A stretch of DNA of 64,000 bases. Origin: Octopus sinensis (taxonomy: Eukaryota). The notes below the pieces were generated by a model, which was given only the letters and a program-made list of their open reading frames with translations, did not search any database and had not been told where the DNA came from. The stretch is taken from positions 15,128,001 through 15,192,000 of the forward strand of contig NC_043013.1 in NCBI RefSeq assembly GCF_006345805.1, in the 5' to 3' direction. Of the stretch, positions 17,315-64,000 are shown one piece after another; the stretch's first letter is position 1, and each line of letters starts with the position of its first letter. Both the position numbers and the translations under genes were made by a program.

Positions 17315-19040
17315 CTACAATATGTTAAAAGTCAGCTTGAATCTTGCTTGCTTGCAATGTTACCCAGCCAAACTGGTACATAGTGCAGAAAATACTATGA
17401 ATTAAGTTACCTCTGAAATGTAAATACGAACGGAATAAAACAAATTTCACATAAATCAAACAAGTGGCTGTGGAGATAGGGGTTTTCGGGGTATAAATAC
17501 CCAAAATGGTGCATAATGGGAAAATATTCCCAAATTAAACTTAACAAAAAAATACAAATTGTTTCTTACAGTAAATGTTTCTATTTTCACTTTTGTTAAA
17601 CACAATATTTTAATCAATCATTTAGAAATATTTCTAGGAGTCGCTGTGTGGTAAGTAGCTTGCTAACCAACCACATGGTTCCAGGTTCAGTCCCACTGTG
17701 TGGCATCTTGGGCAAGTGTCTTCTGCTATAGCCCCGGGCCGACCAATGCCTTGTGAGTGGATTTGGTAGACGGAAACTGAAAGAAGCCTGTCGTATATAT
17801 GTATATATGTATGTGTGTGTGTGTGTGTTTGTCCCCCTAGCATTGCTTGACAACCGATGCTGGTGTGTTTACATCCCCGTCACTTAGCAGTTCGGCAAAA
17901 GAGACCGATAGAATAAATACTGGGCTTACAAAGAATAAGTCCCGGGGTCGATTTGCTCGACTAAAGGCGGTGCTCCAGCATGGCCGCAGTCAAATGACTG
18001 AAACAAGTAAAAGAGTAAGTGAATGTGATTTCAACTATGTAAGTTCTTTGTACAGTAAGTATTCATATTTTAGCTTTCTTTAAACAGACAATATTTTAAT
18101 ATTTTTTAAAAATCATTTTCAAGCGAATACCATTACAAAAATTTTTTGGCATATTTAAAAAATATTTTTATGTGAAAACGACTTTAAAAATACGGTAAAT
18201 ATTTCGTAAAAGACCTATTCATAACCTTGTTGTGAAATATTTTTTTTTCCAGAGGTTTTCGTCAAGTGCATTCAACATATCCCACTGCCAAAGATTCGGC
18301 TGCTATTTCTAGTACGCCCTGCTACCATGTAACAGCTATTTGTGATAAAGGACTCAAAATATCTGTTACATAGTAGCAGGAGGTGCAAGAAATAACAGCC
18401 AAATCTTTCAAAGGAGCCGTCTATGCGTGATTTCGATGTCACATTCTTTGAAAGCATGTGAAATAACCTGGAAAATGAAAAAAACCCCACGAAACAAAAC
18501 TCCATAGCTGGGAAACTTTTTCGGTGACCCAACAGGTCACAGGTAGTCAAGTATATATATATATATACTTGGAAATGGATGCGTGACGTTCATCAAGTAA
18601 TAATATAAATAATATATATATACATGCACATGCGTATATGGGTACAGGACATCACCAACAGTAAACAACGTGAAATACGAGAGCAAATGAGTTCAATGCA
18701 CAAACAACAAAAGAAACAAATGGAAAACAAGACAAGTAACACAAAGAATGGCCCTTCATCAGTTGTCAGCTGTCTATCTACTCCTCATTTCGAGCATTGA
18801 ACGAAAATATGAATCTTCAAAGACAGTTGCTCCCGTAAGTACTAAAATAAAATTTGAGATTTATGGAGGGTCAAATTTGGGAACAAAAACAGGACAGTGG
18901 AAACCGAATGCAAACAAATTGAACTCATTTGCTTTTGTATTTCATGTTGTTTACTGTTGGCGACATCCTGTACCCATATATGCATATGTGTGTATATATA
19001 TATACGTGTGTGTGTGTGTATGTGTGTGAGTGTTATTTAT

Positions 19041-28210: not shown

Positions 28211-28659
28211 AGTTATCCGGCCATCGGAAAAATATATATGCATGTATGCATATATATGTATGTATATATATATATGTATACTCTTATACTTGTTTCAGTC
28301 ATTTGACTGTGGCCATGCTGGAGCACCGCCTTTAGTCGAGCAAATCGACCTCAGGACTTATTCTTTGGAAGCCTAATACTTCTATTGATCTCTTTTGCCG
28401 AACCGCTACGGGGACGTAAACACACCAGCATCGGTTGTCAAGCGATGTTGTGGGGACAAACATAGGCACACAAACATGTACACACACATGCATATATATA
28501 AATACATATATACAACGGGCTTCTTTTAGTTTTCGTCTACCAAATCCACTCATAAGGCTTTGGTCGACCAGAGGATATGGTAGAAGACACTTGCCCAAGG
28601 TGCCACGTAGTGGCACTCCTACGACTATATATGTGTATATGTATGGATATATGTATAGT

Positions 28660-29978: not shown

Positions 29979-32900
29979 GTAATACGTGTGGAACCTCTCC
30001 TAAATTACAAATTGCTACTGTGTAACTGGGTCAATGCCTGCTTTGGGCTGCTATCGTAGTTTAACCACAGGTCGGTCTAGATCCTGCAGAGGTATGGTCA
30101 TAAATGACACCAGCCTGTTTTCTTATTCAAACACAGTGTGTCTAGGACTACACTATATGATGTATCCTTCCTACCATTAGTTGTTCATCCTCAGGGCAAA
30201 CCAATTATGAAAGATGTTCCAACTATGAGAATCCTGTCTTTCATTCAAACACAGTATGTCTAGAACTACATTATCTAGTTTATCCTTCCTTTCTTTATAA
30301 CAATGTGATATGATTTATAGAAATTTAGCTGCTATTTCCAACAGATTTAGTGATGTGTCTTGTTTATGGTTTAACACCTAAGTAATCATAATAACTAATG
30401 ATGTTTGATATGTTTATATGTATATGTGTGTGTGTGTATTCAGGGTGAGCCAAAAGTCACTGAGGGGTTTTAATTTTTAATAACTCTCTTATTTTTACAA
30501 ACAGGCGTATGAAATTTTAATTCAATATAGAGGAGATAATGGAGAGTGATCTCTGTATATATAAACAGCAAAATGTCTGTCTGTGTGTGTGTGTATCCTT
30601 TATACAAATCCACAATTTTTCAGTTAGAGGGCTTTCATTTTCTATGGTCATTCAAAACCGTCCAAGGGTGGTCGTGCACATCTTTACATTTCCCCAGTCA
30701 CCCCTCAAAGCCATTAAAAAATCAATAGCAGTGACTTTTTTGTGAATTTTCTATCCAAAACCCAATCAAAATGCCCGAAACTTGATACGCCAATTGAATG
30801 CCAGCTAGCTGTATGTGATTGGTCGGAAACTTGGACAGTACTTGCGTGTATGTGTGCACACTCGCAGCTGTATATGCATGCACTAGCACTATGACCCGGC
30901 ATTGCCGGGTCATAGTGCTAGTCTGTATTAATCCTTTTTCATCATAACTCTGCATTATATATGAAAAGTATCTTTTAAATGATGTCCATTTTCAGCTCCA
31001 CACATCTGTGCCCTTTCCAAAATATGTTCCTTGATAGTTGTGTGTTTTTTCAAGGTCCATTTCCCTGATTTCTCTAGTGATATTCTCCTTCAAATTACTC
31101 CAGGGTTTCTGGTTTGTTGACATAAACCTTCCCCTTTGGGTACCCCAACAAGAAGAAGGTAGGGCTGGTTAAGTCTGGGGAATGCGATGACAGCAAGAAA
31201 TGATTCTTTCTCCAAAGCATAGCCTCAGCAACTGCCCTCTCTTGTGGTATGAGCAGTTGCCTCATTTTGCTGGAACCACACATCAGGCCTGTTTTGAATG
31301 GGATCAGTAAAATAAGTACCAGTTAAACACTGGGGTCTAAATAATTGACTTACCTACTCCCATGAATTTTCTAGTCTTGTGCCAAAATTTATGTTTGCAA
31401 AACTGTGGGTGTGTGTGTATACGGGGAGAGGGGTGAGAATGGTGTGGACTTGTCTATGATTTAATGCATCAGCATTCATAATACTAATAGATTGTTTTTG
31501 TATTTTTGTTGTTCTTTTTAACTTCAGATGGAGTTTTACTTCAGTAATTCAAATTTACACAAAGATCGTTTTTTCAAAAAGCAAATTGATAAAGACAAAG
31601 ATGGATGTAAGTTGAATTTTGTTTTTCTATTTGAATTTTTCTGCTTTTTACTCTCTCTTTGTTTCATTTTCATTTTAAACATTATAAGCCTTACAGAGGA
31701 GATGACATTTTCTCTCTCTCTCTCTCTCCTTCCCCTCCCCTCCCTCTCTCTCTATCTATCTATCTATACTTGCATAGCCATATAACTCTTCTGCTTCAAG
31801 ACATTTGTTTCTGCCCCTCTGTCATACTCTAATTTCTCATCGGCTGGCACAAAGCTACCTTCCCCCTCAGTTGGGGTGGTTTTTCTCTTGCAAGTTATTT
31901 GGTTACCTCACTGGTGCTGGTGCCATGTTAAAAGCACCCAGTACACTCTTTTAAATGGCAGGCATTAGGATGGGTATCCAGCCATAGAAACCATTTCCAA
32001 AGCAGACAGCTGAACTTGGTGCAGTCTTCAAACTTGCCTGCTCCTGTCAAACCGTCCAAACTATTCCCGCATGGAAAACAAGTGTAAAATGGTGATCGTG
32101 ATTCATTCAAATATCCGCTTTTCCATGCTTGCATGGTTCGAATGGAATTTGTTGAGGCAGATTTTCTACAGCCAGATGCTCTTGCTGTCCTCAACCCTTA
32201 CCTTCTTAGGAAGGTAATATTTCCCCATGGCCAGACATGTTTTGCAGAATATTGGAAATGAATGTCACTGCTTGTATCACAAGCATGTTTTCCAGGGAAG
32301 ACTGGAAACAAACAACCTCACTTATATCATGACAATACTCATTTACAATTATCATGGGATGTCTAGACAAAAGTACACACACACACACACACACACAATG
32401 GACTTCTTTTAGTTTCCGTCTACCAAATCCACTCACAAGATTTTGGTCAACCTTAGGCTGTAGTAGAAGGCACTTGCCCAAACTGCCATACAGTGAGATC
32501 GAACCCACGATCACATAGTTGGGAAGCAAGTTTCTTAACCATGCAATCACACCTGCACCTATGCTCCAAACAGCTAATTAGCAACAGAACAGTTATTTTG
32601 CTAAATCATTTAAAATTTTTAATTATTCTCCAAATTAATTGAAACATATAGACAGTCTATATCTTTAGAAATACATTTATAAAAAGGGTTAATAATCATT
32701 TGTAAATTAGACTAATTAATCATCATCATCGTTTAACGTCCGCTTTCCATGCTAGCATGGGTTGGACGATTTTGACTGAGGGCTAGCGAACCAGATGGCT
32801 GCACCAGGCTCCAATCTTGATTTGGCAGAGTTTCTACAGCTGGATGCCCTTCCTAATGCCAACCACTCCGAGAGTGTAGTGGGTGCTTTTTACGTGCCAG

Positions 32901-35900: not shown

Positions 35901-38900
35901 GACACACACACACATACATATGATGGGCATCGACACAATTTCCGTCTACCAAATTCATCACAAGGCATTGGTCAACCCAAGAGTACACTTGCCCAAGGTG
36001 CGATATATTGGGGGCTGAACCTGAAACCATCTGGTTGCAATGTGAGTTCCTTAATGATCCCAAGTTTAGTTGAAGTTTGTAAAATAAGTCATAGTGACTC
36101 ATCTGGGAGCACTACTATATTTGAGAAACATCTAGAGAAACACTTAAAAAAAAAGAGTAATTTTAATATTTTTACCTTTTGCTCAATTTACCTGGATTTA
36201 CCTGTAATTAAAGTCACTATGAGACAAAAGTTATGCAATAGAATTGATTAAGAACCCTTTCTTTAATTATGTTCCAAATATCACTTTAATATGTTGATAA
36301 GTAAAAAAAGTTACAGTTATTTAATGAAACAAGCCTAAATTCATGATTATTTTAGAATTTAATTGAAACTCATGAGGGGTGTATTTTGGTCAGAAATATA
36401 GTAGTGAAAGGGTTAATCACACAGCTCTACCTCCATAAATGGTAAAAAGAAGAAGGAAATTGTTCTATCAACTCTATTGTTTCTTTGTAAAATATAACAA
36501 TACCATAATTGTTAAATGTTGATTCCAATATTTTCAGGAATTGCTGCCAGCCAACGCTGACCATGACTGGCTGAAGAAAGTGTTTTCCTCCTGTGGGATG
36601 GTCACTTATGTTAGTCTTCCACGCTATAAGTCCACTGGAGATCTCAAACAGTTTGCATTTGTTGAATTTGAAACCATTAAAGGTGCACAAAGAGCTTGTA
36701 AAGTGAGTCTATCTTTCTTTTATCTTTCTTTGCTTCATTTTTTTTTTCTTGTGTTCTTCATTGCTTTCTAAAAACCTTCCATCATCTTTAAGTCAGTGAA
36801 AAATAAGAACCAAGTAACCCTTTCATCACCAACCCGGCTGAAACATTTGAGTACAAATGTCTTGTTTTCATAAACTTTGAATTAAAATCTTCCACCAAAC
36901 TTTAGTCACAATTTATGTTCCTAACACTAGCTGAATGATAACTAAGTTATTTTACTAAATTCTTTGTTATTATTAAAGTAATTGAAAGAAACACAGAGCA
37001 TCTCAAAATGAATACAGTAACAAAGGGGTTAAATATTGGAGGAGGGTTCAACTTAGGAAAATTTATTTACCTTGTGCAAAACTAAGAAATCCTACTTCGA
37101 TAAAGTAGTGGTTCTCAACTATTTTTTTACCTATGGATCCTTTTGATTCCTGTTTCACTTGGGTGGACCCGCATAGCCATTTGAGGTTTATAAAATCCTG
37201 TTATGTCTTTATTACTAAATATTACTAAGAATTCTTTTTCTTTATTCTTTTATTCTGTTACTTGTTTCAGTCATTTGACTGCGGCCATGCTGGAGCACCG
37301 CCTTTAGTCGAGCAAATCGACCCATGGCGTATGTGTTCCCCAGCTGGATGGGATGCCAGTCCATCACAGTGTTACTCATTTTTGCCAGCTGAGTGGACTG
37401 GAGCAACGTGAAATGAAGTGTTTTGCTCAAGAACACAACACATTGCCCGGTCCAGGAATCGAAACCACAATCTTACGATCATGGTGCTGACACCCTGACC
37501 ACTAAGCCACGCGACTCCACAACGATGATGATACTCAACATAACATATTTGGCACTGCTTACTTTCAGGTGGTTAATCAGATATTCAGCTTGTTAATCAT
37601 CATCATCATCATCGTTTAATGTCCGCTTTCCATGCTAGCATGGGTTGGACGATTTGACTGAGGTCTGGTGAACCAGATGGCTGCACCAGGCTCCAATCTT
37701 GATTTGGCAGTTTCTACAACTTGATGGCCTTCCTAACGCCAACCACTCCGAGAGTGTAGTGGGTGCTTTTACGTACCACCTGCACAGGAGTCAGTCCATC
37801 AGCACTGGCAACGACCTCACTCGAATGTTTTTTCATATGCCACCAGCACAAGTGCCAGTAAGGTGACGCTGGTAATGATCACGCTTGAATGGTGCTTTTT
37901 ACGTTCCGCCGGCATGGAAGCCACTCCAGCGGCACTGGCAACAATCCGCTGAGATGGTACTCTTTGTATATATGTATCTGCATTTATATGTGTGTGTGTG
38001 TGTGTGTGAGTGTTATTTGTTTTGTTAATACAGAAAAATGGATATAAAATACGGAATATGAAGTTGCTTTTGTTGTCAATTTGTTGCAGGAATTAAATCA
38101 ACCCCCCATTGAAACTACCAGTAAACCTGGAAAATTCCCCAAGAATAACAAAGCTTTCAACCAGCTGAAGAAGAAAGTTCAGACAGAAGGTAAGCAGATG
38201 GTTTTGATTTGGCTCTCTGTATAGTATCATTGGCATCGTCAGTATCATACTCTCTTTTACTTGTTTCAGTCATTTGACTGTGGCCATGCTGGAGCACCAC
38301 CTTTAGTCGAGCAAATCGACCCCAGGACTTATTCTATCGGTCTCTTTTGCCAAACTGCTTAGTTACAGAGACGTAAACACGCCAGCATCGGTTGTCAAAC
38401 GATGTTGGGGGGACAAACACAGACACACAAACATATATACACACATACATATATATGACGGGCTTCTTTCAGTTTCCGTCTACCAAATCCACTCACAAGG
38501 CTTTGGTCAACCCGAGGCTATAGTAGAAGACACTTGCCCAAGGTGCCATGCAGTGGGACTGAACCCGGAACCATGTGGTTGGTAAGCAAGCTACTTACCA
38601 CACAGCCACTCCTATGCCTTTTCATCATTGTTATCATTGTCATCATCTTAATCGCAATCATTATTCTCATCATCATCAGTAGCAGCAGCATTCTCACCCT
38701 TCTCATCCTCATCGCCATCCCCTTCCTCCTCCTCAGTTTGACACTCACTTTTTGTCCTTCATTGTATGGATCAGACAGAATTCAATGAAACAAATTTTCA
38801 AATATCCCTCAAATCACAACCTGATATCTTAAACACGAGAAAAGGGAAGACTCTTTGTTTACTGTAGTCCTAGATACACTTGTTTTTTTCTGAAAACAGG

Positions 38901-41900
38901 ATGGGTTGGTCTTATCATCATCATCGTTTAACGTCTGATTTCCATGCTAGCACGGGTTGGACGATTTTGACTGAGGGCTGGCAAACCAGATGGCTGCACC
39001 AGGCTCTAATCTTGATCTGGCAGAGTTTCTACAGCTGGATGTCCTTCCTAACTCCAAGATTGTAGTGGGTGCTTTTTACATGCCACCGGAACGGGGTCCA
39101 GTCGGGTGGTACTGGCAATGACCTTGCTCGAATCTTTTTACACGTGCCATCAGCACAGGTGCCAGTGAAGCGACGTTGGTAACGATCACGCTCGAATAGT
39201 GCCCTTTTACATGCCACGGGTACGGAAGCCAGTTGGCTGCTCTGGCAACGATCACGCTCGGATGGTGCTCTTGGCACCCTACTAGCACAGGCATAAGTGC
39301 CAGTAAGGCAACGCTGGTAACGATCATACTCGAATAGCTGCTCTGTCAACGATCAGCGGCTCTGGTTTGGAATACTCTTAACCAAACATAGGCCTTCTCA
39401 AAATCGGCAAATCATCATCTGGAACTAAATTAAATTACAAAAATTCAGTTGGCTGGTGTGTTGGGCAGTCGTAAGCCACAATTAATATATTTCTTTAATT
39501 TGTTTCAGTTTTTGGACTATACCATCCTGGGGTACTTCTTTCATTTCTTTCTCTTTATCTCTCTCTCTCTCTCTCTCTCTCTGTAAACCTTCATTTTTAG
39601 TGCATGGTTCTTTCTACAACTCTCACTCTCTCTCACCCCACCCGCCACCCCCAACAAGCCAACCTCTATGTGTGCTCTCACCTTGCAAGAAATAGCAGCC
39701 AAATCTTCTTGAAATCATAGCCTGTTTTAAGAGAAGATGAACGCTTTAGTTAATGTAACCCTGAATATATACACCACGTGTGTAATGTTTGAATAATGAT
39801 AATAAAAAAAAATAGGATGGTCACAGCTGGAAGTGTCTTTGATCCTAAGTCTCTCTTCCTGCTCTATCTGGGCTCACTTGGGGGTTAAACAGCAGCAACA
39901 ACTCTACAGTCTCTGCAAAATGAAACTGTGGAACAGATTGCTAAGACTGTTTGATTTGGAGCAACATTGAAAAATGACGTATAATAATCTATGATGAGGA
40001 AGAGTAGGAGAAGGGATGATGATGAGGAGAAGTGGTGGTGATGATGCTGGGTGATGGGTGGTGCTATATATCAGGTATGCATGTAGTGGAGAGCTGGCAG
40101 AAACGTTAGCACGCCAGGCGAAATGCTTAGCGGTATTTCGTCTGCCGTTGCGTTCTGAGTTCAAATTCCGTCGAGGTCAACTTTGCCTTTCATCCTTTCG
40201 GGGTTGATTAAATAAGTAACAGTTACGCACTGGGGTCAATATCATCATCATCGTTTAGCGTCCGTTTTCCATGCTAGCATGGGTTGGATATAATCGACTT
40301 AATCTGTTTGTTTGTCCTCTCTGTGTTTAGCCCCTTGTGGGTAGTAAAGAAATAGGCATGCATGTAGTGGGAGCTACTCTACTGGACTTTGTCATGTGTT
40401 CCTTTTCTTTGTTTTCTGTAGATGGAATGGATTTGAGTGAGGAGAAACCAGAATGTGATCTCATTAGCAACGACAGTCCGAAGAACAAAGGCTGCAAACA
40501 GAAACGAAAACGCAACAGCAGCTCCGAAGCCAAGGAACCGAGCCGACCAATTAAACAGCGGAAGTTGGAACCGTTGTGTGGGGAAAACACCGATGAAGCA
40601 AACATCAAGTTCGAAGGTCAAGCAGAAGAAGGTGCCAAGTCAGAAGACGAAGATCGAGGTTCTGGTAGTTGGAAGAAGAAGAAAAAGAAGAAACGACATC
40701 GGTCGGATAGTTTCAGCAAACTTTCCAATGATGTTTTTCCTGAGAAGTGTAAGCTCCAACGTCGGTCTAGCAGCAACTCAAAACTAAGTGATATCGAACC
40801 GGCTGATAGACTGGCTCAAAAATCAGAGACTGATTTAAAATCATCGAACGAACAGGAATCAGGTGAGACCGCGACACAGGAAAAAAAGACTCCTCATGAA
40901 ACTGAATCACGGTTAGAAAACTTATCTGCAGACGAAGGAATCGATTCTGCTGCTAAAGATGCTAAAAGGTCTAAAAGGAAACGGAAAAAAGACAGCGTGG
41001 ATAGTACAACTAGTAGTGATCTGGAGAATGTGCCAAAACGTATAAAATATGACATAACTGAAGAAAACAATATGCAACGGGATCATTCTCAAGATTGTAA
41101 TAAGAAACGGCGCCATAAGAATCGTAAGCGATCCAAACCACTTCCACACTTGCGGGTCATCTCCAAGTGAGTTGTAGTTCTTTGTTTTTATTTCTTTCTT
41201 TTTTGTATCATGCATCTTCCTGATAGACATTGGTGCAATTATGTTTTTTTTTTTCTCTATACCTCTAATACTGATCATCTCTGAATCTTATCAACTGAGC
41301 TGAAAAACTTTTTGTAGAGGAGATCTGAATAAGACAGAAACATGTCTTATTTTCATCAGTTTGCTTTACTGACCAGATCTACTTTTGATTGCAATGTGGC
41401 TATTTGCCCAGAATTTTGGATTAGATCAGTAGTACTCAACCATTTTTTATCTGTGGACCCCTTTGATTATTGTTCTACTCTTGTGGATCCCTACAGCCAT
41501 TCGATGTTTAAAAACTAGTTTTATAGATACTTCTTTCAAAATTCCTGTTTTGTTTATCACATATTCATTTGTGTTGATAGAACTATTTAAAATGTCAGAA
41601 AAAGAAACCTAGCTTTTATTTGCAATAAATACATCTAAAACAAGATTTTTTCATGGATCCATAAAATACTATTGTGAACCCAATTTAATATTTTTCTTGT
41701 GTGGACCCATGAAAATCTTATATGGATCACAAGGGATCATATGGACCCCAGTGAGAACCACTAAATTAGCTGATTATAGTTTGTTTTATAAAGTCATTTC
41801 ACCTTGTTTTGAGATTTCAGATTTCAAATTGTCTTCTAATTGTAAGAATAATCTCACTTATTTGAAGCTTTTCAACTCCCTCTATTACATATGTGAAATT

Positions 41901-44900
41901 CTACTTCAAACATGCATACATATATATCTATATAGAGAGAATTGTTGTATAACCTTTAAAAGCTATATCCACATAAATTTAAAGCTTAGTTAATAACAGG
42001 TCATTAAATTCCAATACGTTATTACAATGCACCAAATCTAGATGGAACCAGCTTGTGTGTATGAGAGGACACTGAAAAGTTCCTGCACTTATTGGTAGTT
42101 GTGTTAAGGTAACTTTGTTGACTCAGTTGATGTTTTTGTTGTTCCATCTCAGGAAGGAATGGTTAGAGTACAAAAGTGAATACCTTGCCAGACAGCGGTC
42201 CAATATGTCCAGGATGAAGCAGAAGCTCATTGAGATGAACAAGAGTCAAGGTATGTTACAACCATAATGAAACACTATTCTATTCAGTCATATTATATAT
42301 GTCTATATTATCCCTTTATACATAACACACACACACTGGACTTCTGCCTTCTATGTTATCCAATGTCCATTTTCTCAAGACATTGACATGAAAAGAGCAT
42401 CCAGTTCATGCTGTAAAGTGGTTGTCATTCAGATAGGAATCCAGTCATAGAAACCAGACCACCAAACTGTCAACTGCCTAGTCTGCCTTGTAAGCAGGCA
42501 CCACAGTGTGATGTCCATGACCAAGACACCAAACCGTCAAAAATCCAGTCTACTTAATTGTAAGCAGGTACCACAGTGTGATGTAGTTCACTGTACTGTG
42601 TCCATGACCAAGACACCAAACCGTCAACAATCCAGTCTACTTAACTGTAAGTAGATACCACAGTGTGGTGTATTCACTGTACTGTGTCCATGGCCAAGAC
42701 ACTGAAGACCTTGAACTGTCAACAATCCAGTTTCTCTGGCTGTAGATTGGATTGTTAACTTAGTATTGTAAAACATGCATTAAAATGACGATAACGATAT
42801 CTTAGAAATATATCTTCAAACCAGACTACTGAATTTTAGCACTATTGAAGTTTTCTATATTTTTTCTATTTCTTTCTTTTCTTTTTTTTTTTTCTTTCAT
42901 ATATATTTCCAGAATGTAAAATTCCTGAAAATTCTTCTGAAGACAAATACAAGTTTATTCCAAATGTGATTGTAAACATTAAGTCCGAGACAGTATTAAA
43001 CGTGAAGGAATTAAAAGTATGTTTTTGGCAATTACCATGTTTATTTGGTGGTGATACTTGTTCTTGTTGCTGGTGTTTGTTTGTTTGTTTGTTGAGCGAA
43101 GCGGTCTTCATCCCATTAGTGGGAGAAGTCCGTAAGGTGGTCCTTTGCTATTTGTAAGACCCGCAGAAGAGAAAGCAGGTCAACCCCCGACATCGAGAGC
43201 ATCGACGGATGGATGAATGCGCATCTAGGCTCAGCGGTTGCGTAGGAAGTCAGGGACAAGAAACAGGAAGAAAAAGTGAGAGAAAGTTGGAGCGAAAGAG
43301 TACAACAGGGGTCGCCACCACCCCCTGCCAGAGCCTCGTGGAGCTTTAGGTGTTTTCGCTCAATAAACACGCACAATGCCCGGTCTGAGAATCGAAACTG
43401 CGATCCTCCGACCACGAGTCCACTGCCCTAACCATTGGGCCATTGCGCCTCCACTATTGCTGGTGTTGCTACAACAGCAGAAGCAACATATTTTGTCTTA
43501 GCATGCAGCTGACAGTGGCTACTTGCTACTGAAGAAGCGCAACAAGACAAATGCACATCTAGCATTCTTACTGTTACTGCTGGAAGATTTTCATTTCTTA
43601 CAAATATATTTTTGTGTTTTTAAACATAAGAGATATTGTCTCTGCACAAATTTCCACTGTTAAATTGGTTTTTCACAATGTATCTACAATATGTATGATA
43701 CATAGATATCAGTTTTAATCTAATATTGCTTCCATTACACAAAGCAAACTTTCATTCAGCTGAGCTGCTATTTACAACATCATGGATTTTTAAATCACTC
43801 AGAATTGCTGAAGCATCGAATAAACTACCCACTACATCCTTGAAAACTTCCATGCTTCCGGAAATTCACCAACACTACACATTAGAGTGGAGTGAAAATT
43901 AAAAAAATTGTGGAAGTTGAAAATGACCAAGGGCTAAAATGTTGCTATATTTGATTACTAGAAAAATGCTAAATTTTTGCTGAGATCAGTCAAGAGCATT
44001 TATTCCTTCAAGCCCCTTAAATTCAGAAAATGATGGATTTTTGTAAATTTTTTACAATAGTGGAGTTTGGGAGTTTGAGGATTAAAGTCAAACAACTGAC
44101 AAGCAAATTTGTGGTATCAAGCAGAATATTTGCTGTAGCCCATATTATTATTATTATCATTCAGTAGTGATGGATTTTGACTTAGCTCGTGCCTGACAGT
44201 GGGTACATGTTATTGACAAAACCCAACAAGGAACAGATGTACATTTAGCATTCTCACCATTGCAGCTGGTCAATTCTACTATTGATATATTTTTTGTGTC
44301 TTTAACCCTTTCGTTACCAACCCGGCCAAAACCGGCTCTGGCTCTGTAGTACAAATGTCTTGTTTTCATGAGCTTTGAATTAAAATCTTCCACCAAACCT
44401 TAGTCACAATTTATGTTCCTAACACTAGCTTAACGATAACCAAGTTATTTTACTGAATTCTTTGTTATATTTAAAATAATTGAAGGAAACACACAGCATC
44501 TCAAAATAAATACAGTAACGAAAGGGTTAAACATTAGAGATATTATCTCTACAAATATCACAGTTAATTTGCTTTTTCAGAATGTGTCTGCAATATGTAT
44601 GATACTCAGATGGCTATTTTAATCTAATACAGCTTCTTTCTACGTAACAAATTTATAACTCTGTTTGTGTGTGTGTGTTGACTGTATGACAAAGGCGAGT
44701 GTATTTAAAGCGATGTAACCTACAGTCAGTAAAACTGTTGTTGTTTTAACAGGGAAAATTCACACCACTTGGTGACATTGCATACATAGATCTGAAAGAA
44801 GTTGATACGCAGGCCTTTGTGCGTTGTAAAAATGAAGCAAGTGCACAGAAAATATGCAATACCAAATTTGAGACATTAAGTGTTTCACTTCTTGAAGGTA

Positions 44901-47900
44901 AACAGAAAAATAATTTATTTGTTGTGAATTCAAAACGGTTTTATTTTAAATTCTTAAACTGGTTCCACTGTTGTTTAGCCCCTGGTCTGTCCTGGCCAAA
45001 GGGGGCCACACCGTGATCATCCTATCTTTTTTTATCTTAATATTGTCTATCTAGGAGTATGTTTTTTAATGCATCCTTCTTCAGTATTGATTAGTCCCAA
45101 GTTAGCCCTAATCTTGCTGACCACTGTCCAAAGAAGTCCCCCTGTGAATGTGCATGGTGCAGTGAGAATGTCAGGCTCACAATCATGAGGTAGTGAGTTC
45201 AATTCCTGGACAGGGTTGTGTGTTGTGTTCTTGAGCAAGACACTTTATTTTCACGTTTGCTCCAGTTCACTCAGCTGTAGAAATGAATTGTGATGCCAAG
45301 CTGTATCGGCCCCTTTGCCTTTCCCTTGGATAAAGTCAGTGGTGTGGAGAGGGGAGACTGGTATGCATGGGTCACTGCTGGTCTTCCACAAACAACCTTG
45401 CCCGGACTTGTACCTTGGAAGGTAACTCTCTAGGTGCAGACCCATGGTCATTCATGACCAAAGGGGGCCTTTACTCTTTACTCTAGCCCTAATCTTGCAG
45501 ACCAGTGTTCAAAGATGTCCCTGTTTTGAACATTGTATATCTAGGACTATGTCACTTAATGCATCCTTTAGTTTTGATTAGGTCCAGGTTTGCTCAGATC
45601 TTGCGGACCAATGTTCAAAGAGTCACTATTGGGAACATCCTGTCTTTTAGTTAGATGTACATGTAAGAAGACTACAATACTTAAATATGTGCTTTAGTGT
45701 TGATTTGCTTCAAGTCAGCCCTGATCTTGCAGATCTTTATTCAAAGATGTCTCTAATGTAAACATCCTACTTTTTGTTCACATATAAGCACGGATTTACA
45801 TATATTCTATTCTAGTACTGATTCTGTTGCATATAATAGAATTATATTCAGTCAATTGGCTCTCTACGACAGTCGTGATTGTTCCTTCATTGTTTTCCAA
45901 TACAGGTGACAGATTTTGTCTTAGCATGTGGTTGGCTACAAGTACATGCTACTGACAATAAATGCATCTAGTGTTCCCACTACTGCTGCCAAACAATTTT
46001 TATTTGCCTCCAAAGAACAAAGAAAGTCCATAAGAGAGATTATCTCCAGAAGAATGCTCCCATAAATTTGATAAGCAGATGACTAATTTTATCTAATCTG
46101 AAACTGCTTCTGTTGCATATAACAGATATATATATATATATATATATATCATATCATTGTTTAACATCCATCTTCCATGCATGCATGGGTAGGATGTATA
46201 TATGTATATATAAATATATGTAAACAATGTGGTATTCAACTGACATCGCAGTGAATTGGATGTTTTACACACCTCTTTGAAGAGATTTCTTTCCTTTGTT
46301 TATTACATTGATATATATATATATATATTGCTGTAACTATGATTGGATGCGCTCACCGTGCAGGTTTCAGCTCTAACATTAAACGTTAAACTCTCGCCAT
46401 TGGTTGTACACACAAGTTGTCCATATGTGAAGGTGGGCTTTGACATAATATAAGGAGCACATCAATAATAAGAATGAAGAACATGGGCATAACTTGCATC
46501 TGTAGTGTGATGTCATGTGTTGCCAAATACTGAAACATATGTAACAGTTGGAGTAAAGAAGTACCAAGTTATCCCCATATTCTTTTCTCATATATATACA
46601 TATATATACATGTGTACATACAGATAGATATATTATACACATATACGTACATACAAACACACACATACACATATATACATATATGAATATATATACACAC
46701 ATGCATACATATACCCTTGCACATCTATATATATACACACACACGCATATACAGAGTGATCAAAGACCACATCGAACATGCTGCAGACTCTCTCTGTCTT
46801 TTCTCTTGTCTCTGCTACAATAAACTCATCTCCTATTCATCTTTATTGTTCAGGTGAAGATGAGAAGTGCTACTGGGACAAACTCAAGGCAGACAGAGAG
46901 AGTAAGATCAACTCGAAACATCGTGTGAAGAAAAGAGGAACACTCAAGGTTTGTTTAAAATCTAGGGACAGTTTTATTTTCACCATTTTTTAAAAAACTT
47001 ATTTAGATGGAACCTTGATATTTCTACATTGAAGTAAGTATATTCATTTTTAGAAGATGCAAAATAAAATTGTGTTGCTATTTCTGTAAGAAAGAAATAT
47101 CTGAATTTTGAATAGATATGACAATATGTGCATCATCATCATCTTAATATCCTCTTTTACCATGCTTGTATAGGATGGATGAAGTTTATTGAGGGAAATT
47201 TTCTGTGGTTAGATATCCTACCTCTTGCCAACACTTATCTGTTCTTGAGCAGAATAGTGTAGATGAGTGTCAATATTTCCCACTGTGGAACTGACAGAAT
47301 TGTTACCATGTGAAGCAAAATGCTTAGCAGTATTTCGTCTCTCTCCATGTTCTGAGTTCAAATTCTGCCAATGTCGACTTTGTCTTTCATCCTTTCAAGG
47401 TTGATAAAATAAATACCATTTGAGCACTGGGGTCATTGAATCATCTTTTCCTTGATCTTGCTGTCCTTGTAATAAAATTGGAAACAATATTACCTTGTTT
47501 GGAAATAGGTTTGGAAACAGGAAGTGCTTCCAGCCATCGAAAATCTGCCTTAATAATCTCCATCTGATCTATGTAAGCTTGGGAAAGTGGACATTAAAGC
47601 AGTGAGGATGAGGATGTTGATGATATATATATACTTGAAGAGGCCACCCATGACTTCTCTTTTGAAAAACAGCAGTTAGGTGATAAATTAACTCATTGCT
47701 GTTATAACAGATTAAGGTAATGAATCTTTGAGAGAGATCTGGTTGTTACATCCAGCCAATATTCCTGAACTAGAAGGCACATTATGTCCTTGAGTAAGGT
47801 ATGTCATTTCATGTTTGGTCCAATCTAAACAAATGTGATGAGTACGTGTGATGTTCTGCAAGTTCAAGGATAGGAAGGGCCACGAGCATGTCCATGTCCA

Positions 47901-51354: not shown

Positions 51355-51757
51355 TCTTTTACTTGTTTCAGTCATTTGACTGTGGCCATGCTTTAGCAAC
51401 GCCTTTAGTTGAGCAACTCGACCCCGAGACTTATTCTTTTGTAAGCCCAGTACGTATTCAATCGGTCTCTTTTTGTCGAACCGCTAAGTGATGGGGACGT
51501 AAACACACCAGCATCGGTTATCAAGCAATGCTAGGGGGACAAACACACAAACATATACACACACATATATATGTATATATATATACATACATATATACGA
51601 CAGGCTTCTTTCAGTTTCCGTCTACCAAATCCATTCACAAGGCATTGGTCGGCCCGAGGCTATAGCAGAAGACACTTGCCCAAGATGACATGCAGTGGGA
51701 CTGAACCTGGAACCATGTGGTTGGTAAGCAAGCTACTTTCCACACAGCCACTCCTGT
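51355..51757 (-). mobile_element. SINE family A
   Basis: Full-length reverse copy. Confidence 0.85.
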
Positions 51758-54700
51758 TGTAAATAAATGCTACTCATTTCTAATATTCTGTGAAAACATG
51801 CCCAGATTATGAGGAAATATTACCCTGGTTGGAAACAGATAAAGGGTGGTGACAGGCAGGTATCCAACCATGGAAATCTGTCTTAATGAAATTCAGCCCA
51901 ACCTGTGCAAGCATGGAAACCTGGGCATGAAAATGATATTCTACAGTGCTTTTCTTGTCTTTAACCTTTGTCTTTTAAAAGGAAGACACTTGTTTATTCA
52001 TCACTGAAAACACAGAATTAGGATGATTATAAGCAGGGAATGTCAACATGTCACTGTTTTTGCTGTTTCATCATCATCATCGTTTAACATCTGCTTTCCA
52101 TGCTAGCATGGGTTAGACGATTTTGACTGAGGGCTGGTGAACCAGATGGCTGCACCAGGCTCCAGTCTTGATCTGGAAGAGTTTCTACAGCTGGATGCCC
52201 TTCCTAACGCCAATCACTCCATGAGTGTAGTGAGTGCTTTTTACATGCCACTGGCACGGGAGCCAATCAGGCAGTACTGGCAATGACGCAAAAGAAAACA
52301 GAATGTAAGTATTCAGGTATACACACTTCGAGTTTTCATAGTTTCTGTGTACCAATTCCAGACTACAAGATGAAGACACTTGCCAAAGGTGACACACAGT
52401 GAAATAGCCAAGTGGTTACAAAGCAATGCAGCTCTGTCTATGCCTTATGTATAATGTGTGTGTGTGTGCATAGACAAGAAGTTTTCAACTGCTGTGTCAG
52501 CAAATTTTAAAGGTGGGTTTAAAATATCAGAATATATATATATTTTTAAAAAATACTGTGTTCCCTCTTACCAATACACCAAACTAATACAGGTGCATTC
52601 ATTTGCAGCAAAGTGCAATATGTACATTCAACCAGTGGCAGACTGGGTCTAAAAATATTGGTTGCCAGGAGACTAAGGGGGCACACCTGCAACTACAATG
52701 CTATCATTTTTTGTTAAAAGTATTCTTTTCAATTGTCTACAAATACAGTCAGGCTGAAATAATGCATAGGAGTGAATAAAAAATTCTCAAACTTGAGGGG
52801 ATGGGCTCCCATATATGAATTCTAATGGCACAGGAGTCCACTTGCCATTGGGCAAGCTGGCCAGACCACCACTGCATTCAACTATTTTTAAAAGAATCTT
52901 TTAACATTTGTATTTTAATACAATAAGCAGGATGTTTGATAACACTTTTAGTACTTTATTCTTGGAAGAAATCTAATAAGTGCAGGAATCATCATCGTTT
53001 AATGTCCGTTTTCCATGCTAGCATGGGTTGGATGGTTCAACTGGGGTCTGGGAAGCCAGTAGGCTGATCTGGCAGTGTTTCTACAGCTGAATGCCAACCA
53101 CTCCGAGAGTGTAGTAAGTGCTTTTTACATGCCACCGGTATAGGTGCCAGGGGAGGATGGCAACGGCCACAATCGGCTGGTTTTTACGTGCCACCTACAT
53201 GTAAGCCAGTCAAGGCGGCACTGGCATCGACCACAATCAGCTGGTGCCTTTTTACGTGCCACCCCTTTTGGTCATGAAAGACCATGGGATTGCAGCTAGA
53301 AATTTACCCTGCAAGGCAAGGTTGTTTATGGAAGACCAGCAATTGCCCATGCATTCCAACCTTGTCTCTCCATGCCACTGCTGTAATCCAAGGGAAAGGC
53401 AAAGGCCGATACAGTTTGGCAACAGTGACATCACAACTAATTTCTACAACAGTGAACTGGAGATACAATAGAGTGTCTTGCTTAAAAACACAACACAGTG
53501 AATATCAGTACCTCCAAGTGCAGGTATTGACAAAAATTAAGACAATATTCTCTGTGCCTGTTTCCTATTTTTAATTATCTGTCACACTATTCTCACCCTT
53601 TTCCTCTATCCTATTTTGTCTTACCAAAAGAGCAAGCCGTTTATTCTCATCCTCAGCAAGACACCTACTCTTGCTCCCCTTACTCAGTTGAGTGGGGCTT
53701 GTCTTGCAGGTACTTACTGACCTCACCAGTGATGGTGCTACAAAAAAAAAAAAAAAAGCACCCTATCCACTGTGAAATGGTTTGTGTCAGGAAGGGCATC
53801 CAGCTGTAGAAACCATGTCAAAGTAGACATTGGAGCTTATCACAGCCCTCTAGTTCATCTGTGCATAGAAAAATAAAAGGGATGTTAAAATTGTATGACA
53901 AATATTCCCTAAGCTGGTACTATGTGCAGGATTTAGTCTTAATCCTCAACACATGAGCAGACTCTCTAATAGCAACATATTTTAGGTGGTGTAAGGTAAA
54001 ACTACCATTATGGAGAAAAGAAACTGCAACAAATTACTTGGATAAAATAATGTTTAACCATTTCACATTCAGATTATTATAAAATGTGAAGTTTTTTTCT
54101 TTTTTAATTCATTGCTGTGAATTAATCATGCATTACCCTGAGGTTTAGATGATGTGATTATCTTTAGAATGACATTGTGGAGGTGTAAGAGACCAGATCT
54201 GGCCAGTTTAAATGCTGGAAAGGGCTGAATGGAACACATCTAGATCTTTCAATTTTGCCCTTTTCTTTCAAAGAAAACTTCTTGTTATTCTATTCTTGGC
54301 TTTTGTTTGTTTTGAACATAAAAAGAATTTAGTAAAATAACTTTGTTGTTAACAAGTTGATATTTGGAACAAAAGTTAACAGGAAATTTTATTGGAAGGT
54401 TCAATTTAGACCACTTTAACCCTTTTGTTACCATATTTGTGGAAATACAATGCCTACGCTTCAATTAAGTTTGAAAATAATGAAAGAATTTAGTATAATA
54501 ACTTCATCACTATGAAGCTGATGTTTGGAATGTATTTTTAAAATTTTGATGGAAGATTTTAATTCAAATCACTTTAAAATGGAGATTTTTGCATCAGAGA
54601 ACAAGGGGTGGTCTCAAGTGGGTTGGTATCAAAAGAGTTAAAAACAGAATTATTAAGAGGTAGTGAGTAGCAGCAGTACAAGATAGCAATATAAGAAAGC

Positions 54701-59713: not shown

Positions 59714-59850
59714 TCATTTGTTGCTTTCCTCACTATCAGCCGTTCCCTCTGAAGTAGCCTCAGTGCTGTCCTTCACACCGTTCCACTGCTCAGCTTGCAA
59801 GGCATTATTTGGAGACACAGTTGTCTCTTTCTCTGTCGCTGCCTCTGATT
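59714..59850 (-). CDS. Terminal coding exon of the same unidentified gene
   Basis: ttctctttcag|AA TCA ... AAC AAA TGA. The phase-1 acceptor matches the 62853 donor. Reads ESEAATEKETTVSPNNALQAEQWNGVKDSTEATSEGTADSEESNK*. GC-richer island in AT-rich surroundings. Confidence 0.78.
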
Positions 59851-60333
59851 CTGAAAGAGAAGATAACAGCAATACAAGTTGAAAGTAAATTTCATTGGTC
59901 GACTCCCTAATGAAAAACGCTAACTCAGGAGAGAAAACTAGTAGCTTTCTTTCTTTTTTTTTTTTGTTTTTTTTTTAAGGTTGGGAAGAGGGAGGGAGGA
60001 GGTGGCAGGGGAGGGAAACGAGTTAAACAACTATGTTGTTAGTTTATTATTATTATTATATATATATACACATATATATAATGTTAATAGAAAAAAATCT
60101 GAGTGAAGATATATCAATTTGCCTAATAGTAGTAATGTTAAACTATAATAATGATAATAATAATAATAAATATTAATAGTGGGCTATGTACAGTTAACAT
60201 TCAGAGAGTTCCTGTCCTCAACACCTTACAACAAAAACTGTTTGTTTTTTGTAGTTTTGTTTGTTTGTTTGTTAGTTGGTCGTTTTTTTGTTTGTTTCCA
60301 AAATAAAAAAAAAAATGAAAAGAAAAAAAGTAA

Positions 60334-61439
60334 TCAGGTTTTTTCAAAATAATCCCCCTCACAATCTATACAAGTTTTCATTCTTTTAAACCAATTTGAA
60401 AAACACTGAGTCCATTCAAAATTGGACAGTTGAGACATTTGGTTAACCAGTGCCTGGACAGCTTCTTCAGGGCTCTCAAATCGAATGCCCCTCAGCTTTT
60501 CTTTCACTTTGGAGAACAAAAAATAATCACAAGGTGACAGATCAGGGCTAGAGCCAGGGTGAGAGATTATCTGCACGTGGTTTTCAGCTAGCAAGTCGAG
60601 TGTTGCTGCAGCAGTATTGATACGAGTGTCATCATGGTGGAGGAGAATGCCCCGGAGACCAGAGTCTGGGCGCTTCAATTTGATTGCTTCAAACAACTGG
60701 GGTAAACACTTGGTCACGTACCACTGTGCACTGACTATTTCCCTGTCTGTCAAAGACGTGGTCACTAAATAACCACTTCTTTGGAAATAAGTTGCCATCA
60801 TTGTTTTCCCAACACTTCGAGGCCTTTTCAGTTTTAAAGGCGGGTCTTCATCTGGAAAGACCCATACAGAAGCCTGCCGTTTTGTTTCAGGTTCATATTG
60901 ATAAAGCCAAATCTGGTCTTCTACAACAATATCCCAGACCTTAGGAGAACCTCCATTTTCAAATTTTTTCAGCATATAATGACACCATTCCACTCGAGCC
61001 TGCTTTTGCATTTCATTAAGAGTTTGTGGAATCCAACAGCAACTATGCTGTTTTAAATGCATATGATTCTGTAGAATCCATTTGACATTTCCTGATCCAA
61101 TGCTTAAGGTACCTTCTATTTCTTTAGGTGTCAATCTTTTATCACTATTCAACATTGCCTCTATAACTTCAATATTTTCAGCGAGTATTGAAGTGTTTGG
61201 GCGGCTAGTTCTTTGGTCATCTTCCAGATCTTCTTTACCACGTCTAAATTCTCCAAACCAGAATTTAACTGTACTGTAAGAGGGACTTAAATCCTGAAAT
61301 AATCGATACAAAATTTCATGACTGTCAGCTGCACTTTTCCCTTTCGAGTAATGCAGGAACATCATGGCTCGAAAATTTCTTCTCTGCAGTTTCATGGTGA
61401 ATACTGAAAGATTAGTCTGCTGCTTAACTTTGTCAAGCT
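60334..61439 (-). CDS. Intact mariner-family (DD34D) transposase ORF, probably an alternative terminal exon of the host gene
   Basis: 353-aa ORF 60334-61395 with HTH region, WIPQTL linker, VVEDQIW.YEPETKRQ, LLHHD and SPDLSPCDYFLF; 34 residues lie between the 2nd and 3rd Asp. Preceded by ttctcatttcag|AG at 61439 and 14 further open codons in frame. Confidence 0.85.
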
Positions 61440-62777
61440 CTGAAATGAGAATGAAGAATGAGAGAAGGCTGAAAGCTCAGCTTGTCTTATAGACAATAAC
61501 GACAATTTAGGAACAGTAAAGATTTGACAAGGTGTTGAATTGAGGAACTGTCTGATGGTGATTTCTTGAAGCATTCTTCCTTTTCTTTTTTTTTTTTATT
61601 TTCTGGGGGGAAGGGGGAATTATAGAAGAGAGATAGAGAGAGAGAGAAAGAGAGAGACAGAAAGAAAGAGAGAGAAAAAACAAAGAAATCAATATAAAGT
61701 GAAGTACTTTGTCATTGTTATCTGAAAGCAGCAAAACAAAAAGAACAAAACCAAAAAAAGGTGCATGACATGACAAATGTACAAGAAACCAAAACCAAAA
61801 ACAACATCAGCTCCTTAAAACTAATAAAACATTATAGAAATAATGACTTCAATAGGTTGGCTTTTATTTATTGTTCTGTTTGGCTGAAGAAGAAAGGGCA
61901 GCACCCATAATCTTCACAGACTCTTACAGACTGGAGAGAGAGAAATGCTGTTGATGATCAGTAAGAACTTGTATAAGGTGGATATTTGTTAAAAACAAAT
62001 CTGGAGAGAAAATACTGGGTTTACTACAGTGTTTGCAAGTGAGAGAGAGAGACAGTGATAGCAGGGAAGGAGGAGCAGAAGAGAGGTAGAGAGGTGGTGC
62101 ACTAGTGGTACACAGCCTGCTAATTTAAAGAGAGAGCGAGAGAGAGAGAGAGCAAGTGTATTTGAATGTGTGGCCCTAGTGATCATGCAGTGTTGAACCT
62201 AGTTGTATAAAAACAACATAGGTATGTATTAGTTAAGAACTGATGATGAAATAGTATTTAGTTCAAGGAAGGAAGTTAGTTGAGTAAACAGTAAACTTGC
62301 AATGTTAATTAAAATGGGAAAAAACTTGAGTTACACCTGGAGACAAGGTATTTCATCATAAATTAAAACAACAAAAAACACAAAATGTTTTATTTTGAAA
62401 CAATTAAGATATTTTCAATTGCATGATTTCTGTAAGGAGAGAGAGAGAGAGAAAGAGAGAGAGAATCAACTATTTGGTTGTGTCAGAGTTCAACCATGGT
62501 TGAATAACAACAACAAAATAATAAGTAGTAGGTTTGATTGTTATACTACCTTAAAATGGAGAGCCACACTTAGCACTGACAAACATTTTGCCCACAGTCA
62601 AATCATCTCAAATCTAACCTTGTATCAGACATATAAGGTAAGGTGATCATGCATTTTAGAGAGAAAATACAGTTTTAATGGATAGGGTGTCTTTTTAAAA
62701 ATCAGAATGGAACACAGAAATGAATGAGAAAAAGAGGCCCTTCTTCCCCAGCAGGGTCCGTGTGACTAACAACCTAC

Positions 62778-62786
62778 CTGTAGTGG
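62778..62786 (-). CDS. Candidate 9-nt microexon
   Basis: ctctttttctctttctttctctcaatccag|CCACTACAG|gtaggttgttag. Symmetric phase 1, frame-preserving. Confidence 0.45.
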
Positions 62787-62852
62787 CTGGATTGAGAGAA
62801 AGAAAGAGAAAAAGAGACTCTCAATAGTTTGGGTGTGTAACTAACAACCTAC

Positions 62853-63498
62853 CTGAAGTGGCTGGATTATCAGGTTTGGTTTCTGGAGCTTCAGAAGCAG
62901 CAGAAACAGGAGGAGCAGTGGTAGGGGTGTCTGTAGTGGTGGTGGTGGTGGTGGTGGCAGCGGCGGTAGTGGTAGTGGTGGCGGTAGTGATGGCAGTGGT
63001 AGAAGTGACAGCAGTGGTGGCAGTGGTTGGGGTAGTGGTGGTGATGGCAGCAGTAGCAGCAGCAGTAGTAGTAGGAGTAGTAGTAGTAGTAGGAGTAGTA
63101 GTAGGAGTAGTAGTATCAACAGTAGTAGAAGTGGTTGTAGTAGTAGTAGTGGTGGAGGAAGCTGAAAGGGCAGGAGCTGGCGATGATGAAGGAGGGGGTG
63201 GAGTAGGTGTCTTCTCACTGGTGGCTGTCGTCTCCTCACTGTCCCCACTGACAGTAGTAGCTTCAGGGGCAATATTCTCTAACAGAGCAGGGGCGGGAGC
63301 AGAGGCAGGAGCGGGAGTAGCAACACTAGAAGGACTGCTATCAGGAGGTACTTCTGTTGTCTGAGGTGGCTTTTCTTCACTGACAGCTTCTTTTTCAGGA
63401 ACTGTAGTCTCTGTGGCAACTGGTTCTGCTGGTGGGGCTACTGCTGCTGCTGGTGGGGCTATTGCTGCTGCTGCTGCTGGGGCTACTGCTGCTTTCTC
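62853..63498 (-). CDS. Internal exon of an unidentified gene (Pro/Ala/Thr/Glu-rich low-complexity region); upstream exons lie outside the window
   Basis: tttgatttacag|GAG AAA ... ACT TCA G|gtaggt. 646 nt (215 codons + 1), open; phase-1 donor. Confidence 0.8.
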
Positions 63499-64000
63499 CT
63501 GTAAATCAAACACATCAGAAATAACAGAACAATTACAAATAAAAAAAAAAAAAAAAAAAAAAAAGAAATGGAAAAATACAATTAAAATGAGAAAGCCAGA
63601 AAATTCAAGTTAGAAATAAAAGAGTGAAAATACTGTTACCTCAATATTTTGGCCAATATAGCCTTCATCATGAACAGAAAGTGGAACATTGTTGTGATCT
63701 ATGGAGATTGGTAGTAACCAAAATGCTTATTTCTTTTCTTAATATAACACTACAATATCTTTGTATGTCACAGCATTCCCACAACTCCATCTATGCAGGT
63801 CAAAATGACATTTCATTTTCCTTCTGATCATGATTTGGGCCTTGCAAGGCCAAAACATTGAAATTTATAAAATAAAAGAGCAAAGCATTGTTTGTTTTCA
63901 TTCCTTTATTTTTGACGTGTATAGTTGTGCTTTCCTAAATTTTAATGACCACTGCATTAACATATTTTAACACCTGTTTTTAATGCAGACGACATCTCAG

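Follow-up and report, generated by a model that had tools for sequence, protein, structure and literature searches.

A mariner transposase conserved in the last intron of octopod SMARCE1/BAF57 is a probable alternative terminal exon of its host gene

We analysed a 64,000-nt window of the Octopus sinensis genome (contig NC_043013.1, positions 15,128,001 to 15,192,000), in which a mariner transposase open reading frame (ORF) lies in the last intron of a minus-strand gene, in the same orientation as that gene. Coordinates below are those of the window unless another locus is named. As judged from its relatives at syntenic loci, the host gene is the orthologue of SMARCE1/BAF57, an HMG-box subunit of the BAF/SWI-SNF chromatin remodeller. 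The transposase has almost certainly been domesticated, and it is probably fused to SMARCE1/BAF57 as an alternative terminal exon. We infer that Octopus makes the chimeric mRNA and protein, and the role proposed for the protein below has the same standing. The features on which the argument rests are as follows, in the order of transcription.

62853 to 63498, minus strand: penultimate host coding exon, SMARCE1/BAF57-like, with a phase-0 acceptor (cag/GAGAAAGCA) and a phase-1 donor (TCAG/gtaggt); a slash marks a splice junction here and below.
61529 to 61555, minus strand: 5' terminal inverted repeat of the mariner element, TCAGACAGTTCCTCAATTCAACACCTT, forming an inverted-repeat pair with the 3' arm.
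61440 to 61483, minus strand: putative captured acceptor region (branch point, polypyrimidine tract and AG), inside the 5' untranslated region (UTR) of the transposon.
61396 to 61439, minus strand: 44-nt leader, formerly transposon 5' UTR, (G)AG CTT GAC ... ACC, which reads ELDKVKQQTNLSVFT in frame.
60334 to 61395, minus strand: mariner transposase ORF, 353 codons and a stop, with HTH_48, a second helix-turn-helix (HTH) and a DD34D catalytic domain.
60201 to 60227, minus strand: 3' terminal inverted repeat, whose plus-strand reading is TCAGAGAGTTCCTGTCCTCAACACCTT.
59714 to 59850, minus strand: host-only terminal exon, with a phase-1 acceptor and the tail ESEAATEK...SEESNK before its stop.

The 353-codon ORF (61395-60334, minus strand) is the longest of the 64-kb window and is, by homology, a DD34D mariner transposase of full length whose triad is intact. 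Pfam recognised HTH_48 at residues 5-54 (E=9.6e-10), and Transposase_1 slightly below its 24-bit cut-off (22.5 bits, 1.1e-4). The Mos1 transposase structure (3HOS) aligned over the full length, to ORF residues 9-351 (E=1.5e-32), and this alignment placed the catalytic aspartates in EDQIW, HHDD and CDYFLF, with 34 residues separating the last two. The triad residues are the same in Argonauta. The other long ORFs of the window gave no Pfam match.

The element as a whole spans 60201-61555 (1355 bp) and is bounded by 27-nt terminal inverted repeats that are complementary at 22/27 positions. The distance from its 5' end to the transposase ATG is 160 nt. A related autonomous mariner with 51% amino-acid identity (L008) has a matching layout, with 32-nt repeats, 187 nt to the ATG and 1314 bp overall; its repeats are unrelated in sequence to those of the window element, and it supports the layout only. 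No TA target-site duplication was seen around the element in Octopus or Argonauta, where the flanking dinucleotides are CA and AT, and the duplication has presumably decayed. The acceptor at 61439 and the 15-codon leader both fall within the bounds 61555-60201; the transposon itself thus supplied the acceptor, from its 5' UTR, and the leader was once part of that UTR.

The penultimate host exon ends with base 62853 in ACT TCA G/gtaggt, a phase-1 donor. The acceptor within the element reads ...ccttctctcattcttcattctcatttcag/AG, and an exon using it would begin at 61439, 44 nt ahead of the ATG. When 62853 was joined to 61439 in silico, the product read ...PDNPATS-ELDKVKQQTNLSVFT-MKLQRR..., with one stop only, at its end; the predicted Octopus junction peptide is ...PDNPATSELDKVK. 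The join of 62853 to 59850 gave ...ATS-ESEAATEK...SEESNK and then the stop of the host-only exon. A sequence-only reading of this window had proposed the two joins as mutually exclusive last exons, and had located the ORF, the acceptor at 61439, the donor at 62853, the exon at 59714-59850 and an AATAAA at 60043-60048. Reading of the minus strand together with the ORF list confirmed all of these positions and the phase-1 acceptor of the ordinary terminal exon, and exons joined by script were in frame without an internal stop, as it had stated.

The same insertion was found at the same syntenic place in Octopus bimaculoides (locus L001), in a third Octopus-like species (Logan contigs L003-L005) and in Argonauta hians (locus L002). 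The window is collinear with O. bimaculoides chromosome CM046617.1, with ~93-95% identity in non-coding DNA, and the closest database protein to the ORF, XP_014783185.1 of that species (99% identical), is encoded on the same chromosome. The A. hians protein GAB1609329.1 falls in the same 90% cluster as XP_014783185.1, and the flanks of the A. hians insertion, an HMG-box gene upstream and a La/RRM gene downstream, match those in Octopus. Beyond these, 5.8 billion proteins gave nothing closer than ~50% identity, in a search that apparently lists only hits at least ~55% as long as the query, so that short partial peptides would have gone unseen. The next match among 1.8 billion cluster representatives was 41% identical, and neither library thus contained a close paralogue. 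The ORF and the repeats were found nowhere else in the window, which was searched with the element by blastn and tblastn, or in 77 kb of related loci, and a repeat search allowing up to 5 mismatches gave no further copies in the window, L001 or L002. By these comparisons the insertion is best described as an old, orthologous, single-copy part of a host gene.

The A. hians genome paper takes ~29 million years (Ma) as the fossil minimum for the separation of Argonauta from Octopus, and places that of vampire squid from octopods at 162 Ma or more (PMC12682272). The capture predates the former split, and hence the ~29-Ma minimum. Annotated proteins outside octopods showed no sign of the capture, annotation coverage there being thin.

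The HMG-box exons of the host lie past position 64000, outside the window. Upstream exons were retrieved in the syntenic genes of Argonauta and O. bimaculoides, where HMG_box was seen and the best matches are named SMARCE1/BAP111; this gave an identity, SMARCE1/BAF57, to what had been described simply as a minus-strand gene. The penultimate exon (62853-63498) is of low complexity and rich in Thr, Pro and Ala, and its counterpart is the Argonauta exon L002:41059-41803 (model P0043). From 62915 to 63150 it consists largely of ACT/ACC/GCT triplet arrays, which vary in length between two Octopus species (42 gap columns in 400). A run of ~32 T (minus strand, 63537-63569) lies in the intron just 5' of this exon.

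Selection on the ORF was estimated from nonsynonymous (dN) and synonymous (dS) substitution rates by the Nei-Gojobori method, omega being their ratio. Between the window and Argonauta, dS was 0.76, dN 0.045 and omega 0.06 (binomial p ~1e-42 for purifying selection); among Octopus species omega was 0.09-0.13. In all four species the ORF has 353 codons, with no indels and no internal stops. Constraint against Argonauta was even across the transposase, with omega 0.03 in the first HTH, 0.07 in the second and 0.055 in the catalytic domain, a pattern which indicates that the whole transposase has been retained, beyond the DNA-binding domain alone. The sequence-only reading had foreseen a chimera carrying transposase HTH domains. 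HTH_48 and the second HTH are there, but that description was too narrow, since the full catalytic domain and both terminal repeats are conserved as well.

The element still looks like a complete transposon, with terminal repeats, 5' UTR, an ORF with an intact triad and 3' UTR, as would be expected of a recent or neutral mariner insertion whose ORF is open by chance and whose acceptor is fortuitous. The earlier reading had itself named a recent, multi-copy insertion flanked by terminal inverted repeats as one of two outcomes that would refute its proposal. Such an insertion would not be orthologous in four octopod genomes, nor is it compatible with the dS of 0.76, the omega of 0.06 and the absence of indels; the lack of other copies in the loci and protein libraries searched and the loss of the TA duplication point the same way. 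We reject this scenario on the orthology and the purifying selection, and give it practically no weight.

The first ~1 kb of the intron (62852-61807) could not be aligned between the window and Argonauta, and a 2.5-kb block at 61806-59332 was 80% identical. This block opens ~85 nt before a candidate micro-exon described below, spans the transposon and the host terminal exon and ends in the host 3' UTR. Within it, the acceptor segment 61440-61483, the 44 nt ending at the AG, was identical at 44/44 positions, the leader at 41/44 and each terminal repeat at 27/27, the five inter-arm mismatches of the repeats being conserved too; neighbouring segments were ~68-81% identical. The 5' repeat is also 27/27 identical in both other Octopus sequences. 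Conserved blocks were also seen just outside the repeats, GGAAGAATGCTTCAAGAA on the 5' side of the 5' arm and ATGTTAAYTGTACATAGCCCA on the 3' side of the 3' arm.

By itself the acceptor is weak evidence of a fusion. The frame is open only 81 nt upstream of the ATG, and a phase-compatible acceptor would be expected by chance roughly 1 in 10 times. It is conservation that gives the site its significance, because the acceptor segment is unchanged in Argonauta while the intron upstream cannot be aligned. The phase of the donor (phase 1) and the 44-nt length of the leader are alike in Octopus and Argonauta. The host-only terminal exon is likewise conserved in Argonauta: its acceptor is again phase 1, an indel of 12 nt leaves the frame intact and the stop is in the same place. 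This conservation marks it as a real coding exon. The two last exons are thus best read as alternatives, in agreement with the sequence-only reading, and the CSB-PGBD3-like architecture that it had proposed is kept in Argonauta in all its parts (donor, acceptor, in-frame leader and host-only exon).

High identity does not end at the leader. In codons 1-60 (61216-61395) the third-position identity with Argonauta was 0.90, compared with ~0.65 in the remaining ORF, and dS was 0.24 compared with ~0.9-1.06; this stretch is continuous with the leader. Because of the third-position identity, constraint at the nucleotide level appears to extend from the 5' repeat over ~340 nt into the ORF. Predicted RNA folding of the leader and the first 180 nt of the ORF was not unusual (z = -1.27).

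In Argonauta the fusion is already present as a deposited gene model. GAB1609329.1 (P0043, 1243 aa) is a SMARCE1-transposase chimera that reads SMARCE1-...DNPPTT-DKNDK-K-LYKVRQQTNLSVFS-MKLQRR..., and its last three exons on L002 are 41059-41803 (with a phase-1 donor), 44192-44206 and 44437-45542. The middle one is an in-frame micro-exon of 15 nt, cag/ATAAGAATGACAAAA/gtaatt, and a splice that skips it is in frame as well. The annotation was made with the GINGER pipeline and four RNA-seq libraries (PMC12682272). A predictor that merges two genes needs no micro-exon, and the chimeric model is therefore likely to have transcript support rather than an ab initio origin.

Two candidate micro-exons were noted in the window.

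61708 to 61721, minus strand: candidate micro-exon of 14 nt, cag/ATAACAATGACAAA/gtactt, homologue of the Argonauta 15-nt exon.
62778 to 62786, minus strand: candidate 9-nt in-frame micro-exon, CCACTACAG, with an acceptor-like site before it and a duplicated host donor, cag/gtaggttgttag, after it.

The first is 14 nt long in 3/3 Octopus sequences, with conserved splice sites; its interior varies among species (GAC to GCT) and its flanks are invariant. Its inclusion in Octopus would cause a frameshift and a stop at a TGA overlapping the transposase ATG (CACCATGA), with the tail DNNDKSLTKLSSRLIFQYSP before the stop. A fusion in Octopus would therefore need the direct join of 62853 to 61439, and the Octopus micro-exon may act as a switch away from fusion. 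As for the second, a further copy of the host-exon end with its donor (aatccagccacttcag/gtaggttgttag) lies ~75 nt downstream, within 62760-62868 (minus strand). O. bimaculoides shares the donor duplication and the candidate 9-nt micro-exon, and Argonauta has a second donor-like copy 322 nt downstream, with no obvious acceptor.

Several observations weigh against a fusion. Neither a spliced read nor a transcript contig or peptide was found to span the junction. The Logan contigs L003-L005 that carry the ORF of the third species are collinear with genomic DNA and hence unspliced. A protein search with the junction peptide gave no candidate, matches apparently being reported only at or above ~55% of the query length, so that long proteins were possibly missed. 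In metagenome contigs neither the spliced junction nor an unspliced-acceptor control was matched; this collection does not hold the locus and is uninformative. In RefSeq the O. bimaculoides ORF is a gene of its own, encoding a 353-aa protein (XP_014783185.1), and the O. bimaculoides SMARCE1 model (552 aa) ends upstream by donor read-through (…QVTE/gtatgt…, L001 5436-5576). The transposase ATG and an A at position -3 are conserved, which is compatible with independent translation. Acceptor-like sites are common, with 10 comparable pyrimidine-rich YAG sites in the 3-kb CT-rich intron. The leader changes relative to Argonauta are 3/3 non-synonymous, leaving the linker without amino-acid constraint. 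The Argonauta model is the product of an automatic pipeline, which could merge neighbouring genes, and the exon path annotated there would be out of frame in Octopus. The last point concerns the polyadenylation signal between the two terminal exons.

60043 to 60048, minus strand: AATAAA, possible poly(A) signal for a transcript ending in the transposase, in the window species only.

The sequence-only reading had pointed to this hexamer. It is present, but its homologue is AATATA in O. bimaculoides (L001 11356) and TATAAA/AATATA in Argonauta (L002 45808-45818), so that the signal is species-specific. A conserved AACTAACWACATAGTTKTTT comes after the A/T-rich hexamer in the window species, O. bimaculoides and Argonauta.

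The annotations deserve some comment. The O. bimaculoides SMARCE1 model is without the last Thr/Pro/Ala-rich exon and without both terminal exons, and it is probably truncated at its 3' end. The RefSeq name of the ORF product, 'SETMAR-like', is misleading, as it describes the mariner half only. A protein search with the Argonauta chimera as query returned SMARCE1 orthologues and a host-only, cephalopod-like transcript of 711 aa (P0045) whose tail differs, and no further chimera.

Many of these observations would suit a nested stand-alone gene, that is, a domesticated transposase transcribed within the SMARCE1 intron from a promoter at or close to the conserved 5' repeat and UTR, and translated from its own ATG into 353 aa. 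The resemblance to an acceptor and the agreement in frame would then be incidental, and the Argonauta chimera would be an annotation merger. In favour of such a gene are the stand-alone RefSeq model, the conservation of the ATG in a Kozak-like context (ACC/AGC ATG A), the leader changes, the frequency of acceptor-like sites and the 14-nt micro-exon, with which the exon path of Argonauta would lose its frame in Octopus. Promoter or 5' UTR function could also underlie the conserved 5' UTR and the synonymous constraint on codons 1-60. However, the best-conserved part of the UTR is precisely the 44-nt segment that closes with the polypyrimidine tract and AG, the conserved block starts at the micro-exon acceptor and not at the transposon end, donor phase and leader length are compatible in both lineages, and a merger would have had no use for the 15-nt micro-exon of the Argonauta model. 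Stand-alone and fused expression are moreover compatible and could coexist; CSB-PGBD3, a fusion discussed below, is reportedly expressed both fused and alone. We consider the nested gene unlikely, and fusion through an alternative terminal exon of SMARCE1/BAF57 the probable arrangement.

For the fusion we propose the following course. A DD34D mariner inserted in sense into the last intron of octopod SMARCE1/BAF57 before the Argonauta/Octopus split, and has since been retained as a single-copy part of the host gene. Splicing would link the phase-1 donor at the end of the penultimate host exon (62853) to the acceptor of the transposon 5' UTR (61439). What had been UTR would be translated as a 15-residue linker, and the 353-residue transposase would substitute for the normal 45-residue acidic tail; where the downstream acceptor at 59850 was used instead, the host-only protein would result. 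The chimera would give the BAF subunit a sequence-specific DNA-binding module for mariner terminal repeats, including the two invariant repeats of its own locus. By analogy with SETMAR, KRABINER and CSB-PGBD3, such BAF-tethered recognition of mariner terminal repeats is likely.

The invariance of the repeats bears on another explanation, in which the element has been kept as a switch at the DNA or RNA level, instead of or besides a protein module. One version has the repeats pairing in the pre-mRNA, so that the transposase exon is looped out and the choice of terminal exon is set; in another the catalytically intact transposase still cuts its own repeats. That both repeats are unchanged across a dS of 0.76, next to the more divergent segments mentioned above, fits a switch, as do the intact DD34D triad and the low omega of the catalytic domain. 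The predicted inter-arm RNA duplex is also strong, at -35.8 kcal/mol compared with -14 +/- 3 for shuffled sequences. Any inverted repeat, however, is expected to form a stable duplex, and repeats that do not vary offer no compensatory changes. They are equally explicable as binding sites for the HTH domains of the protein, and the data are silent on excision. We regard a switch as very unlikely.

A bolder form of the fusion is that a complete mariner unit, with the intact DD34D transposase and both repeats, has been kept unchanged at one locus and tethered to BAF via SMARCE1, the repeats being working parts. We hold this to be a speculative and rather improbable extension. If it were true, the repeats could be an RNA stem setting the isoform ratio, self-binding feedback sites or substrates of regulated cleavage, and the chimera would recruit BAF to mariner-repeat relics genome-wide.

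Short interspersed repeats of ~140-220 bp with 72-78% identity are common to the window and several sites of the O. bimaculoides locus, for example at 51542-51890, 38417-38621, 32103-32280, 28468-28602, 17645-17828, 6868-7084 and 3452-3650. These are probably SINE-like (short interspersed element) families not related to the mariner.

Compared with known systems, the octopod locus combines features of several. Like SETMAR (Metnase), it has a mariner transposase downstream of host exons, predicted to be captured by splicing, with the whole transposase under purifying selection and with binding of mariner terminal repeats as the expected role. The catalytic domain of the ORF matches SETMAR structures (E=1.4e-21), and its N-terminal HTH region matches a separate structure, 7S03 (1.6e-09). 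SETMAR is a primate SET-domain gene fused to an Hsmar1 mariner transposase, whereas the present case is of the octopod lineage and has a host-only terminal exon downstream of the transposon. The octopod host is SMARCE1/BAF57 and has no SET methyltransferase; Pfam found no SET or pre-SET domain in the ORF or the host exon, nor in the Argonauta chimera, where HMG_box and HTH_48 were the only domains. The SETMAR triad is DDN while the octopod triad is DDD, and the octopod element keeps both terminal repeats invariant.

CSB-PGBD3 arises from ERCC6, which has a piggyBac insertion in intron 5. As in the octopods, a transposon lies in sense within an intron and the host belongs to the world of SWI/SNF chromatin remodelling. 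As proposed for the octopods, an acceptor upstream of the transposase ORF makes an alternative 3' terminal exon, so that the locus encodes a host protein and a chimera. The two differ in the transposon (piggyBac there, mariner in octopods) and in the host (an ATPase there, an HMG-box accessory subunit here). The CSB-PGBD3 chimera has only an N-terminal part of its host, whereas the octopod insertion, being in the last intron, would keep essentially the whole host protein.

Host-transposase fusions of tetrapods, including KRABINER, were catalogued by Cosby et al., whose survey covers vertebrates (bioRxiv 10.1101/2020.05.07.082677). In these cases too, DNA transposons provide exons and splice sites, and alternative splicing captures transposase domains into regulators of chromatin or transcription; KRABINER also resembles the octopod chimera in its transposase family. 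To Mos1 the octopod ORF is similar in its two HTH motifs, its WVPHEL-like CWIPQTL, its DD34D triad and its YSPDL-like SSPDLSPCDY, and the element in its length (~1.3 kb) and its imperfect ~28-nt terminal repeats starting with TCAG. Mos1 is autonomous, whereas the octopod element is fixed as a single copy, occupies the same syntenic place in different genera, is under purifying selection and has no TA duplication left. On these grounds the octopod element appears to act as a host gene and not as a mobile element.

In vertebrates, the fusion of host genes with transposases is well known as a source of new regulators. The sequence-only reading knew of no cephalopod case, and our full-text literature searches likewise gave no account of SMARCE1/BAF57 fused to a transposase, nor of a domesticated mariner in any cephalopod. 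To our knowledge, the fusion partners in known examples are KRAB, SET or SCAN-type domains or a fragment of an ATPase, and never an intact core BAF subunit. The present locus is a clean natural setting in which to ask why a transposase, once domesticated, should keep its catalytic triad and both terminal repeats. If the BAF57-mariner chimera is conserved across octopods, it would be a means, specific to that lineage, of directing a chromatin remodeller to defined DNA sequences; active research on genome reorganisation and regulatory novelty in cephalopods adds to its relevance.

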